From positions 9,610,001 through 9,674,000 of the forward strand of contig CM119378.1 in assembly GCA_051294905.1 (NCBI GenBank): 64,000 nt of DNA, written 5' to 3'. Under the pieces are notes generated by a model. That model searched no databases and had not been told where the DNA came from. It saw nothing but the letters and a program-made list of their open reading frames with translations. A program made the translations under genes and the position numbers. This document shows positions 49,601 through 55,600 of the stretch, piece after piece. This stretch comes from Botryllus schlosseri. Taxonomy: Eukaryota. Position 1 is the stretch's first letter, and the number at the start of each line of letters is the position of its first letter.

Positions 49601-52600
49601 ACTGAACTGAATATATAATTAAAAATAACGTCGCGGTAAAATTACTTTGTTCTCCGTGGCGTGTTTTTCTTTTTCAACTTTAGCCAACGTGAGCTCAAGA
49701 TTGTCAATGTCCTTCTTGAGTTCGGAGCATTCGTCTTCCAGTTTCCTCTTTTTGGATACAAGATCATTGCTGACCTCTTCCTCGTCTTCCAACCTTTCCA
49801 CAATATCTGTATGACATGACTGCTAGTTACTATTCAGAATATCTCACCAAGTATTATCTACGGATGTGCTTAGGCGTATCGTCCCTATTTCCTCAAATTT
49901 TGACAGTATTTAAAGATGTCAAGTCCCCGTCAGACGCTACATCTATCGTTCTGGTAAGCTACCATAGTTACCCACCTTTTATTTTTGATTCAAGCTCCAC
50001 TTTTGTTCTTATTAACTGATCGCAACGGTCTTCAGCATCCTGCAGGTTTTCTTGCTCCTGAATCAACCGAAATACCACAGAGTCAGTACACAGTAGATGT
50101 ATTTAACATAGCCCATATAAGATTTAGCCGTGTTCTATTGTAAAAAATGGAATTAAACAATGGAATAAGAAATATCCTAATAGCGACAGATCAGTGGTTC
50201 CCAACCTATTGTACTTAGTAGATTCTGTTCTTTTACTGAAGGGAGGTATTAGTTCAGGTGGAGTTGATTTTGAGTTTTTTGAAGTCGTCGTGGGTAGGGG
50301 CAATCCCACCAATGACGGCCTACGTGCAAGAGATCTAGTCGTAAAGCATTGGAATTTTTACCAAACCAAATTCCGTTTTGATATATTTGACCACAAGAAT
50401 TCCAAATGGATCCACTGATGGCCATGTTTTAGTAGGCCATGATCCACTACAGAAATAATTAACTGCGCCTTAAAATGGGCAGTTTACTTTCTGTTTCGCT
50501 TCCTTCGGCAGCCCAACACGGTGGAAACACTGTTTGACTGCCTTCGGCGCGCGGAACATATGTAGGTGGTACGCGAGCACTGCATAAAACCTCGAAATGG
50601 CACGTGGGTGGGAAAAGGTTGGGAACCACTGCGATAGATGAATAAGATTGATTTACAGCAGTGAGTTGAAGAACAAGGTCGTTCTTCTCTTGTATCAATG
50701 AAACTTGATTCTCTTCTAATTCTTGGCGGCGTTTCTTCTCCTTTTCAAGGACATCTTTCACATCTCCCATTTCCTTCTCGATCGCTTCTCGTTCTTTCGC
50801 ACTTTCTGCGCTCTTTAATAGCGGTTTGATTTTGAACATCAACCTCATCCATTCCCAGTTTCGAACAGCGAAGTAAGACCGAAGGTTTGCTTGGATAACG
50901 ATTAACGCTTGCCTGCAATTACAGAATACAAATTCCTTACGTACTGAGTTTGATATTTTCTTGGCATATGAGCTATTAAACAAACAAATTTATGTCAATA
51001 GTTCATAAAAAAACGTTTACATTGATGAACGAAAATGATGGAGATGTTCATTTCGTGCATGAGTAATCAAATCACCGATAGCGGCTGAGTGCTCAATGAT
51101 TTACGTCACGGCTCATGTGGTTTTTGTAGCAATAAGCATTTGGCTCTGTTTACTCTCGGCATATTGAGGATTTATGCAGTTCATCATCATTGGTTTATTA
51201 GTTTCGCCTAATTCCTTTCACATCTCGTGTAGTTAAGTTGATGAAAAAGCAGCATGGTGCTCTACTTCACTAGTAAGTCTACGGATACGCCTTACACCAT
51301 CTACATGGGCGCCGATAAGCACGAGAACGAAGACCTTATAAAGTATGGATGGCCGGAGGACGTCTGGTTTCACGTAGATAAGGTATCATCTGCGCACGTC
51401 TACCTCAGATTAAGACCCGAAGAAAACCTCGACGAAGTGCCGCCAGAAGTACTTATCGATTGCGCACAACTTGTCAAAGCTAATAGCATTCAAGGCAACA
51501 AGATGAACAACATACAGATAGTTTACACAATGTGGGATAATTTGAAAAAGACTGCAGGCATGGACGTCGGGCAAGTTGGGTTCCATCGTCAAAAAGACGT
51601 GAGGCTGATTAAAGTTGAGAAAAGGATCAACGAAGTCGTGAATAGATTAAATAAAACAAAACAGGAAAAATTTCCCGATTTAAAGGAAGAAAAGGAAGAC
51701 CGCGACAGATTAGAGAGGAATGAAGCAAAGAAGATTTTGAAAGAACAGCGCGAAAAGGAAAAAATCGAGATTAAGAAAAGGAAAGAAGAGCAGTCCCTGC
51801 GCTCTTATGACTCTTTATTTGGCGAATCCGAAATGCAGTCCAATCAAAATATGGATGAGGACTCCGATGACTTCATGTAATCCTATATTTGATGAACAAG
51901 GTATAATAAATGCGCGGTACTGCAAAATCCAGTCGCAAGGTTCTGACTCTGCCGAGAAAGTTACTAACTACTCCTCATCGCAATGCCTTCAAAACGCGGA
52001 CACTGGTAGGCCTGTGTCATATTACATGGAGTCTCAGTTGTCAAAAATATAATGGTTTGCTGGTTCACTTGCGATTTTAAAGACGCATTAATGTTTTCAT
52101 AACAAAGTAAGCCTAATATTTATGGTTATTTCATATGGGACATGATACGAAATTTCATGCTTAATAATATTTAGGTCATGTTTGTTTTGATTTTTCAGCC
52201 GAAAAAATGGTTACCTGCTTATGTAAGAATAGGTTTGGTATGCTTATGGTGAAATGGAAAATAGACCCGTGTATGCAAGCAATAAAGAGCTGCAATGTGG
52301 GATCGCTTGGACTATCTCCATCTCTCCTGAGAACATACAGCCAAAATTTGCAGCCAGCTAAGCAGGATGTTAAGCAGGAAAAGTCGGTTTCTATTAAAAA
52401 CATAAATTACCGTACCGACGAATGGACAAATGTAACGCCGAAGATTCTATCGCATATCGGCAGGAACTTACACTTGCAAAAAGACCACCCGATTTGTTTA
52501 CTGAAGGACTTGATAGTGACTCATTTTTATTCGAAATACACAAGATCGAGAGACCGTCCTATATTTGCCGTCTCGGATAATTTGTCGCCGGTCGTGTCGA

Positions 52601-55600
52601 CGCATCAAAATTTCGATAGCATGCTGATTCCTAAGGATCACGTCAGTCGGCAAAAATCTGATAACTACTACATCAACTCGAGCACAATGTTGCGCGCGCA
52701 TACTTCAGCGCATGAAGCAGACTTAATTCGCTCCGGACTTGATGCCTTTCTTACAGTAGGAGACGTGTATCGAAGAGACGCAATTGATTCAAGTCATTAC
52801 CCAGTATTTCATCAAATGGAAGGTGTGCGACTTTTCACAAAACATGAACTATTCCAAAATTCCGACGAAAAATTGAGTCTATTCGAAAATGGCGTAGAGT
52901 TGCCTGATAAGCAAAGCGGTCACACGTTGGAAGCCACAAAACTCGTGGAGTTTTCGTTGAAGAAGGCGTTGGAGGATTGTATGGAAGAATTGCTGGGAAA
53001 AGGCATCGAAAGCAGATGGGTGGACGCCTATTTTCCATTCACTCATCCGTCGTTCGAATTGGAAATCAAGTACGAGGGTGAATGGATGGAGATGTTGGGA
53101 TGTGGGGTATTACGGCAAAACATACTCGATAATTCAGGCGCTAACGACAGGATCGGATGGGCGTTTGGATTAGGCTTGGAACGCATCGCGATGAAACTGT
53201 TCAATATTCCGGACATCAGGTATTTTTGGAGCGACAGAGAAGAGTTCCTGGTGCAGTTTCGAAATCAAAAGAATATCAAAAATTTGAAGCTTAAACCGTT
53301 CCTGAGTAAAGAACCAGCACTTATCAACGACATATCATTCTGGATTCCTAACAATTTCTCCTCCACGGATTTTTATGATTTGGTCCGTAATGTCGCGGGC
53401 GACCTTGTAGAAAATGTGAGCTTAGTGGATGAATTTACCCATCCAAAATCCGGTGAACAGAGCCACTGCTACCGAGTGTGCTATAGACATTTATCTAGGC
53501 CTTTATCTCAGACTGAAGTCTCGGACGTAAACGATGCCATCAAACGTGAAATTGTGTCGCAATTTGGTGTGCGTGGTAGATGGTAAATTGTTCCTTAATA
53601 AACATTCATCATTGGTATGATGTGTTGCTGAGGAATGTTATAGTATGGTCGGAAAAGTTTTTCAGCGTTAATTTTCTGCGCTATGTTCTCATTGTTTGAA
53701 TTGACAGATTCTTTTATAGAGACAACCAGGTGACCAGGTGGTGAAAGTTATCAGCGAGGCTACCCAAGTACAAAAAACGCCAAAAATTTATGCAAATTTA
53801 TGTAAAAGTAGCAAATCCCAACACATGTCAAGAGGAAGAAAATGAAAATGACAGACCTTGAAAGTAGTTTCAAAATGTTTATTAGGTCGAGGGTCGGCAA
53901 TCGGAGGTGGCGTCATTCATTACTACAAAAATGCATGGTTTATATTCGCAGCTAATGACACTTGCAAATAGGTAGAATCTAGGAAAACATATTTAGAGCT
54001 ATTTCACGAGGTTCTTATGAAAGTGATGCATGCTTATTCCAAAACAACATCACTTTTTGAATGGAAGTTGTAATCTGTTAAAGAAGAAGTACTTGGTTAC
54101 TGACCACCATCGGAGACACTCATTCCTGACCCATGAACTAGCGAAATATAATTCGGGAGCTCAAGGACATTGTTGGAAAAATATGTTGCCACACTTCGAT
54201 TGGGAAGTCGTTACCGTAATAATGCATGATCTTTGGCGCCGCAAAGCTCACCTGCGCGCATGGCTCGCACGCCTCGCAGTATTAATAAATGACATCTATT
54301 CTATCACCTTCTCTCCAACATCCGTTGGTATTCAATCCTCATTTGTTTTCCTCTCGCCCTGGACTGGATCATTGTTATGATCAAAGACAATCGCTGGTCG
54401 CGCATGTCTTCCAATTCTCCAAGCATACCGGCTTTGAAAAAAATCTACGGAAGAAACAGGTGATGTTGAAAAGCATGTCTTTGTTGCGTATTTTGTAGCC
54501 CAGAACAGGTACGGGCAACAGACGGCCCGCAGACACTTTCCGGTTTTACATGATAATATGTGACCCGCGGTACTACATTTGCGTTGCAATCTAACTGATG
54601 TTCACTTACACTCTAAGGGTTTCTACGTCTCATTGAATTATATTATGATAATGACTCCATTGAACACTGTTTTTGGTCTCTTTGCTTCAAACTCAAAGTT
54701 TGTATTAAATACGATATATTTCTTGCATAGGTGGATAAATCCGCCATTAATGTATCGATTCAGGAGTCCGGCCCACCAAGTATTTCATTTTCTCATATCC
54801 GGCCCGCCGACTACAGAAGTTTGCCCGCCCTTGGCCCAGAAGATACATGGTAATTGGTAGCCTACTGTTGCTATGGTTCCAAACCTTGGTAAGGCCGAAC
54901 TTGAATTGACTGGAGTCCATTTCCAAGCTCGCCATCAGTTTTTCAGTCGCCTTCTTGCTGTCCATAAACTGTCCTTCGGGCGCTGCGTTCGGATTCAAAA
55001 TCCGGTACCTTGAGAACGCAAAACTTTGTTCAATTGAGATTTGACGGGTAACTTGTCACTTCACCTTTGTTTGAATTCGGCGTAGAGTATTCTGCTGGGG
55101 AAACCCTTCCGGCAGATACGGATTCCTTCCAGTACACCGTTACAGCGGAGCTGGTGCAGTACCAGTGAGTTGTCCATCATACCCGGTTGTTTTATCTCGT
55201 TCGGTATGATGCAACGGACGAAGTGAGGTTGCGTCGAGCGGAGATTGGTCATTAGTCGGTTGAGGGATTCCTAAGGAATATTTTGAGGGTTTACGCTACG
55301 TTTTTTAGCGTTTCATTCACAATTTGGCTTCACATATATTCGGCTGAACATAGTAATATAGTACATACTCGATGTAACGATGATACCGTTTGGAATGAGC
55401 CTCCTTTTTGACGCTTACCGCGGCCAGCCTTCTTCTGCTCGGTGACTAAAGAATAAGAAAATCAGATGAGTCCGAATAAAAGTATTGAAATACTGAGATC
55501 CAAAGATTAGAACGCTCATTGGCATGCAAAAAACGAATGAAGGCATATTTTGCTGCATTCATAAGCGTGTAGTCAGGATGAGAATTGGGGCAGGTGTCGG

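Follow-up and report, generated by a model that had tools for sequence, protein, structure and literature searches.

Approximately 20% of the genes of the ascidian Ciona intestinalis are located in operons, which typically begin with a single-exon gene (60% of them; PMC2760879). The prevalence of single-exon genes in these operons was left unexplained (Satou et al. 2008, PMC2760879). Approximately half of ascidian genes are trans-spliced, whether in operons or not (PMC1488885). In the present study, we analyzed a 64,000-nucleotide (nt) stretch of the genome of Botryllus schlosseri, a styelid-like (stolidobranch) ascidian (assembly GCA_051294905.1, contig CM119378.1, positions 9,610,001–9,674,000; hereafter the window, numbered from its first nucleotide), in which two housekeeping genes, CCDC25 and FARS2, lie in tandem within one intron of a myosin heavy chain (MHC) gene and on the strand opposite to it. 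The closest described systems are the spliced leader (SL) operons of C. intestinalis (PMC1488885, PMC2760879). Similar to these operons, the pair comprises unrelated genes on the same strand, the downstream gene carries the common SL, and the first gene has a single exon; a first gene with a capped non-SL start also occurs in Ciona. Moreover, CCDC25 and FARS2 are adjacent in Ciona itself. In contrast to the Ciona operons, an AATAAA follows the CCDC25 stop codon in the window, with possibly up to approximately 270 nt between the probable proximal poly(A) site and the acceptor, the entire pair is housed within an intron of a different gene, and all introns are gone from the downstream gene.

Two further classes of genes are relevant. 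Nested protein-coding genes of metazoans are intronic and mostly antisense to their hosts. The window resembles them in that the guest is inside one host intron, on the opposite strand, and has its own promoter and poly(A) signals. However, the guest here is a probable two-gene operon, and its two members, far from being young duplicates, are essential and single-copy. Orphan retrogenes are retrogenes that replace the parental gene. As in such cases, the sole remaining copy is intronless at a new locus, and sister taxa retain an intron-bearing gene elsewhere. In contrast to orphan retrogenes, two cistrons, the spacer, and the acceptor would have moved together, the template would have been an unresolved dicistronic RNA, and a poly(A) tail and target-site duplication were not demonstrable at the window locus. 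Retrocopies and operons in Caenorhabditis have reportedly been the subject of one study. Nothing pertinent emerged from a literature search on retroposed operons or dicistronic retrogenes.

A tandem pair has already been described in B. schlosseri. The genes fuhc-sec and fuhc-tm are separated by a 227-bp spacer, and the two genes, each correctly spliced, are joined in transcripts that are capped and polyadenylated; no SL was found on the downstream gene, and the authors favored read-through (PMC3691228). These linked transcripts show that a colonial ascidian does produce dicistronic RNAs that stay unresolved. CCDC25-FARS2 is likewise an ascidian tandem with a short spacer. However, in contrast to the fuhc pair, its downstream gene, FARS2, clearly carries the SL.

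Results

Transcription and trans-splicing of CCDC25-FARS2

CCDC25 (51254–51880, plus strand) and FARS2 (52207–53586, plus strand) are arranged head-to-tail and are separated by a 326-nt spacer (51881–52206). Raw RNA reads of an unstranded library (X23) covered 51055–53619 at a depth of approximately 5–20, and this coverage was continuous from CCDC25 through the spacer. The flanks of the intron were silent (depth of zero over 53620–54303 and of 0.35 over 50884–51054). Since the reads dropped out in the intron flanks, the guest signal does not originate from myosin pre-mRNA. The depth of the spacer was 6.8–10.7, which was equal to that of the FARS2 body. In this library, 87% of reads had unrelated extensions, and isolated loose ends (e.g., 51238) were left uninterpreted.

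In nine X23 reads, the template-switch oligo was followed by 22 nt and then by the genome from 52197. The leader piece, including the shared AG, is the 25-mer GATTGGAGTATTTGGTTGTATTAAG; Table 1 of PMC3795323 gives this sequence as its only SL consensus for chordates. The spacer contains a pyrimidine tract and AG acceptor at 52183–52198 (plus strand), and the leader is joined at 52198|52199. On the basis of these nine reads, FARS2 mRNA is SL trans-spliced 8 nt before its ATG. A local upstream exon as the source of the leader was rejected: no copy was present in the window at up to three mismatches, whereas the last 21 nt of the leader plus GT occurred 566 times elsewhere in the genome (reversed control, 0). 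The leader copies were dispersed across all chromosomes, with at least two flank families (L006/L009 vs. L007/L010), and their 5′ flanks diverged immediately upstream of the leader. The SL RNA genes seem to be scattered, possibly carried by repeats, and not to form one tandem array.

The start of the CCDC25 mRNA differs from that of FARS2. Four raw reads passed from the template-switch oligo and one extra G straight into 51138/51139, and the 5′ ends of contigs near CCDC25 were at 51120–51161. From these four reads, we infer a capped non-SL start of the CCDC25 mRNA, and thus of the CCDC25-FARS2 unit, near 51138 (plus strand), approximately 116 nt before the CCDC25 ATG. The acceptor of FARS2 was bridged or abutted by contigs at 51161–52598 (run X15), 51902–52305 (X2), and 51860–52200 (X1), the last of which ended right at the acceptor. 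An AATAAA is present at 51905–51910, 25 nt past the CCDC25 stop codon, and contig depth decreased 3- to 4-fold just past it, which makes a proximal CCDC25 poly(A) site probable. The AATAAA of FARS2 is at 53597–53602, and RNA coverage stopped near 53620. Downstream of the FARS2 poly(A) site, run X15 also yielded a contig of 445 nt at 53802–54221, with a depth of 7.8 and a single 1-nt deletion, for which the other runs had no reads; it may be a low-level transcript or myosin pre-mRNA.

Identity and integrity of the guest genes

Both guests were identified by Pfam and orthologue matches, and FARS2 also by its position inside the tunicate clade of a tree. The CCDC25 reading frame (a single exon, 208 amino acids [aa]) matched NFACT-R_1 (PF05670; 2.5e-36) over profile positions 1–111 of 112. 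The FARS2 reading frame (a single exon, 459 aa) matched tRNA-synt_2d (PF01409; 5e-43) and FDX-ACB (PF03147; 1.1e-16), both of which exceeded the cut-offs. Its architecture, a class-II PheRS core followed by a C-terminal anticodon-binding FDX-ACB domain, is that of mitochondrial PheRS (phenylalanine-tRNA ligase). Identities to full-length orthologues were 57–85% for FARS2 and 66–97% for CCDC25. Among named proteins, FARS2 was 57–72% identical to ascidian and 52–61% identical to vertebrate FARS2, while CCDC25 was 78% identical to that of Styela and mostly 64–69% identical to those of vertebrates. A chance pattern of open reading frames (ORFs) is ruled out by the full-length orthologues of both.

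In a six-frame search of the whole 495-Mb assembly, in which every first-look candidate was scored, each protein was found at this locus only. Relative to a closely related species (contig L003), the nonsynonymous and synonymous differences (pN and pS) were 0.071 and 0.79 for CCDC25 and 0.118 and 0.83 for FARS2, corresponding to a pN/pS of approximately 0.09–0.14 for both, with synonymous sites saturated and no stop codons. This pattern of substitution indicates strong purifying selection on both genes. The FARS2 start codon was placed at 52207 because the N-terminus M-V/T-T/S-C-L-C-K is conserved between B. schlosseri and this relative. We concluded that the two proteins are the sole copies of the organism and are functional. 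In the FARS2 tree, the terminal branch of B. schlosseri was three times longer (0.22) than those of its two closest relatives (0.07–0.09), which suggests that the protein is evolving faster in this species.

The possibility that the guests are dead or dying retrocopies, or an artefact of assembly or contamination, is negligible and was rejected: they are intronless and oddly placed, but neither has a second copy in the genome, both reading frames are intact and under strong purifying selection, both genes are expressed and properly processed, the same arrangement is present in the independently assembled contig of another species (L003), and myosin mRNA is spliced precisely around them.

The host myosin intron

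The host is a sarcomeric class-II MHC gene on the minus strand. Its intron at 50913–54307 (3395 nt, phase 2) separates a 137-nt exon encoding the end of the converter and IQ1 (54308–54444) from a 256-nt exon for IQ2 and the first part of the S2 coiled coil (50657–50912). The borders on the minus strand are AG|GT (donor, 54308|54307) and cag|G (acceptor, 50913|50912), and the CCDC25 ATG is located 341 nt from the latter. Contigs from three public runs (X1, X2, and X15) contained the joint 50912|54308, with exactly 3395 nt skipped; further myosin joints in RNA contigs were 54444|54885 and 55006|55063, such that the 137-nt exon has RNA joints on both sides. These runs are RNA-derived because their contigs contain spliced forms of myosin. 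The guest unit, at approximately 51138–53620, is wholly inside the sequence removed from myosin mRNA.

The spliced myosin frame is open, running from the last part of the motor domain through IQ1 and IQ2 into the beginning of the S2 rod. The 256-nt exon matched residues 810–892 of human and bovine Myosin-7 (3.5e-25), and head exons, which also have RNA joints, lie upstream at 54885–55006 and approximately 55063–55270 (minus strand; Pfam Myosin_head at 4.4e-27 for 55061–55252). Read by eye, the minus-strand ORF at 40887–41177 resembles a myosin coiled coil, and that at 62107–62613 contains the P-loop motif GESGAGKT. These similarities suggest that the myosin gene may cover at least approximately 40.9–62.6 kb of the window.

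In the same genome, three MHC paralogues have an intron at the identical position, following "...ERR" and in phase 2. These introns are 507, 237, and approximately 4400 nt in length, and no recognizable gene was found in any of the three. Since the position is common to the three paralogues, the host intron is older than its guests. The 507- and 237-nt introns belong to two head-to-head paralogues on contig C14, and the intron of approximately 4.4 kb, which contains no recognizable ORF, is L015:3768–8169 on contig C10.

The original prediction described two intact single-exon ORFs in tandem, 326 nt apart and each with a nearby AATAAA, in a 3395-nt myosin intron between exons of 137 and 256 nt. 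All of its coordinates hold, and the RNA joints from the three runs bear out the intron. The segment is a true myosin intron, both guests are single-copy and expressed, and no intron-bearing parental copy of either gene was found in the 495-Mb assembly. However, the description of the host as highly transcribed is unsupported: contig depth in the bulk runs was approximately 15 for myosin vs. 20–100 for the guests.

The next myosin intron (50284–50656) largely consists of an interspersed repeat of approximately 350 nt, with 1365 first-look candidates in the genome and copies that are approximately 80% identical. Contig depths of 1000–2600 at this position are due to the repeat, which did not match any tRNA or Rfam family. 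A scan of 50000–55300 for tRNAs and known RNA families did not find any.

The tandem in other ascidians

Synteny comparisons revealed CCDC25 and FARS2 in tandem in Clavelina, Styela, Ciona, and two further assemblies. In Clavelina lepadiformis, a single-exon CCDC25 is followed 426 nt downstream by FARS2, in which at least five introns were seen (neighbors, Top3 and UCH). The pair of C. intestinalis consists of a single-exon CCDC25 and, 272 nt downstream, a FARS2 with seven introns (neighbors, a methyltransferase and ECH). In Styela clava, CCDC25 has one intron and the tandem FARS2 has six (neighbors, MFS and pentaxin). The ascidian-like assemblies L017 and L018 contain a single-exon CCDC25 in tandem with FARS2, with three introns in the part found. 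Both genes are intronless in two relatives of B. schlosseri. In the first (L003), FARS2 is 85% identical to that of the window and the pair is in the same myosin intron, which is 3671 nt long. In the second, FARS2 is 80% identical and a short minus-strand ORF is located upstream of the pair. The Logan sample SRR25569784 contained a CCDC25 that was 97% identical to that of the window and a separate CCDC25-FARS2 contig with a FARS2 that was only 80% identical; two species of ascidian, or else highly divergent haplotypes, are probably present in this sample.

The flanking genes of the pair are wholly different among the annotated genomes of Styela, Ciona, and Clavelina, and in none of these three does the pair lie in a myosin gene. 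A pyrimidine-AG site is present 4–56 nt before the FARS2 ATG in all five spacers (the window, L003, Styela, Ciona, and Clavelina). The CCDC25 gene of Nematostella is multi-exon and has other neighbors. Human CCDC25 and FARS2 are on different chromosomes. Judging from this distribution, the CCDC25-FARS2 tandem is ancestral to ascidians.

Since CCDC25 is a single-exon gene in Ciona, Clavelina, L017, and L018, its intronless state is ancestral and not a local loss. The one exception is the 480-nt intron of Styela at aa 88/89 (L011:10267–10748), which was absent from the other ascidian copies seen. We rejected this intron as ancestral: the nearest exon border of Nematostella is at approximately aa 81–83. 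As it is off that border, it is probably a lineage-specific gain in the first gene of the operon.

Loss of introns from FARS2

Introns of FARS2 near aa 143, 215, 268, 310, 363, and 414 are common to Styela and Ciona, and Clavelina shares those at least at 143, 215, 267, and 414. An additional intron near aa 102 is present in Ciona, Clavelina, L017, and L018 and absent from Styela, which lost it independently. The maximum-likelihood tree of FARS2 followed the species tree (support for tunicates, 100/100; for the clade of Styela and the window species, 86/88). The three intronless FARS2 genes, which among the ascidians examined are restricted to B. schlosseri and its two close relatives, formed one clade (100/99) that was sister to Styela. 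Therefore, with the intronless trio beside the intron-bearing Styela in the tree, the intronless state arose within a subclade of styelids. Two of its three members, namely, B. schlosseri and L003, were seen to have the pair nested in the myosin intron.

The neighboring Intu-MFS pair of Styela is conserved on contig C16 of the B. schlosseri genome. No trace of CCDC25-FARS2 was found there in the 20 kb on the side on which the pair is located in Styela.

Discussion

The present results make it quite probable that CCDC25 and FARS2 form an SL-resolved dicistronic operon. The pair is on the same strand, the SL is on the downstream gene, the boundary is transcribed, and the first gene has a single exon, which matches the defining features of ascidian operons. 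In the proposed mechanism, RNA polymerase II would read through both genes of a 2.5-kb plus-strand unit, from approximately 51138 to approximately 53620. The CCDC25 mRNA would be made from the 5′ part of the transcript, and trans-splicing of the 25-nt leader to the acceptor, 8 nt ahead of the FARS2 ATG, would release the FARS2 mRNA. One primary transcript is inferred to feed both mRNAs.

Several points weigh against an operon. No single long molecule spanning CCDC25 and FARS2 was present among the RNA reads or contigs, and contigs cannot prove one transcript. The AATAAA and the 3- to 4-fold decrease in depth point to a proximal poly(A) site approximately 270 nt before the acceptor, while intercistronic DNA is absent from typical Ciona operons, in most of which the upstream gene has no AATAAA (PMC1488885). 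Since trans-splicing is common outside operons, the leader alone is not proof of one. Furthermore, the capped start rests on four reads.

In the fuller account, which we also consider likely, albeit with a little more reserve, this SL-resolved operon is nested in a pre-existing myosin intron, the old tandem having been relocated and the introns of FARS2 lost. In the ancestor of B. schlosseri and its two relatives, the pair would have left its former place and FARS2 would have lost all of its introns; the pair would have landed in the myosin intron of B. schlosseri and at least one relative. The original prediction offered a compact operon and a pair of retroposed or intron-lost genes as alternatives. 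The SL on FARS2 and the transcribed spacer directly support the former, and the introns retained at shared positions by the FARS2 orthologues of Styela (six), Ciona (seven), and Clavelina support intron loss for this gene. However, the two are not mutually exclusive, because an old ascidian pair has moved, and intron loss does not apply to CCDC25, which was already a single-exon gene in Ciona, Clavelina, and the two further assemblies.

Regarding the route into the myosin intron, we tentatively suggest reverse transcription of a cis-spliced, unresolved dicistronic RNA, a proposal to which we attach slightly less than an even chance. In its complete form, a "retro-operon," which we put forward more tentatively still, the copy of the dicistronic RNA would have been inserted antisense in the myosin intron, kept its acceptor, gained or kept a promoter, and replaced the parental locus in a styelid subclade. 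Since a copy of a dicistronic RNA would retain the internal acceptor, FARS2 would still have been expressible. Capped, polyadenylated, and correctly cis-spliced dicistronic RNAs are present among Ciona expressed sequence tags (PMC1488885) and in Botryllus (PMC3691228). In favor of this route, every FARS2 intron retained by Styela was lost, and the relocation occurred in the same lineage. Moreover, the inserted piece corresponds almost exactly to a single transcription unit, occupying 2.48 kb of the 3.4-kb intron, while the corresponding introns of paralogues are 0.24–0.5 kb.

Other observations argue against retroposition. No convincing poly(A) tail or target-site duplication was found around the guest unit; the weak candidate relic at 53769–53806 (plus strand) consists of an A-rich tract (53769–53787) followed by a 13/14 copy of 50985–50998, and an equally good match to the latter was obtained in 20 of 300 shuffles. 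A working promoter is present upstream, and CCDC25 of Styela, too, is preceded by a cAMP response element (CRE)-like octamer. The lost FARS2 intron of Styela shows that piecemeal loss occurs. When the host intron was compared with that of L003 to locate the borders of the insertion, only the coding parts aligned; the non-coding DNA was saturated. We also looked for an SL relic before FARS2 as a sign of retroposition of a mature mRNA: by eye only, the 25 nt before the acceptor were no more similar to the leader than a T-rich tract of any origin would be.

Several of these points are expected if the same operon moved at the DNA level, by insertional translocation or transposon capture, with the introns lost separately, either through recombination with cDNA or one by one. 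We regard this explanation as possible, but on the doubtful side. Rearrangement is rampant, as the pair has different surroundings in each of the ascidians examined, and the independent loss of the intron near aa 102 in Styela, the functional promoter, and the lack of a poly(A) tail or significant target-site duplication all fit such a move. The motifs TTACGTCA/TGACGTAA precede CCDC25 in the window and likewise in Styela. The comparison of the two promoters identified only the shared CRE-like octamer and a 9-mer, TGTAGTTAA, approximately 25 nt before the CCDC25 ATG; these are too little to decide between transfer at the DNA and RNA levels. However, a DNA-level move needs two breaks within a single intron only a few hundred bases long, as well as a transferred fragment of almost exactly one transcription unit. 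In addition, all introns retained by Styela disappeared in the lineage of the relocation.

An explanation that dispenses with the operon altogether is unlikely in our opinion. CCDC25 and FARS2 may be two independent neighbors, with a FARS2 promoter inside the 326-nt spacer and monocistronic trans-splicing. The spacer reads would then represent the FARS2 outron and read-through of the CCDC25 3′ untranslated region, and the adjacency would be kept by inertia or a shared regulatory region and not by co-transcription. The canonical AATAAA with the subsequent decrease in depth and the frequency of trans-splicing outside operons are consistent with this explanation, as are the coding-to-coding spacers of 272–975 nt, which exceed the <100-bp rule for Ciona operons (PMC2760879). 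On the other hand, the depth of the spacer is as high as that of the FARS2 body and coverage from CCDC25 is unbroken, no capped non-SL start was found in the spacer among the loose ends listed, and the tandem survives in at least six ascidian genomes despite the scrambled order of the surrounding genes.

Tunicate genomes routinely contain nested genes as well as SL operons, and the arrangement itself is unsurprising. However, a conserved CCDC25-FARS2 pair and the relocation of a whole operon as an intronless cassette seem to be undescribed. The survival of the linkage through a near-total scrambling of ascidian gene order argues that co-transcription constrains rearrangement. If the relocation was RNA-mediated, it would provide a concrete and testable route for the spread of operons and for intron loss in operon genes. 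If the retro-operon is true, SL trans-splicing lets polycistronic retrocopies survive, which could help explain the richness of tunicate operons in single-exon genes. Moreover, with the sole mitochondrial PheRS gene placed head-on against a muscle myosin gene, this locus is a clean natural test of transcriptional interference.

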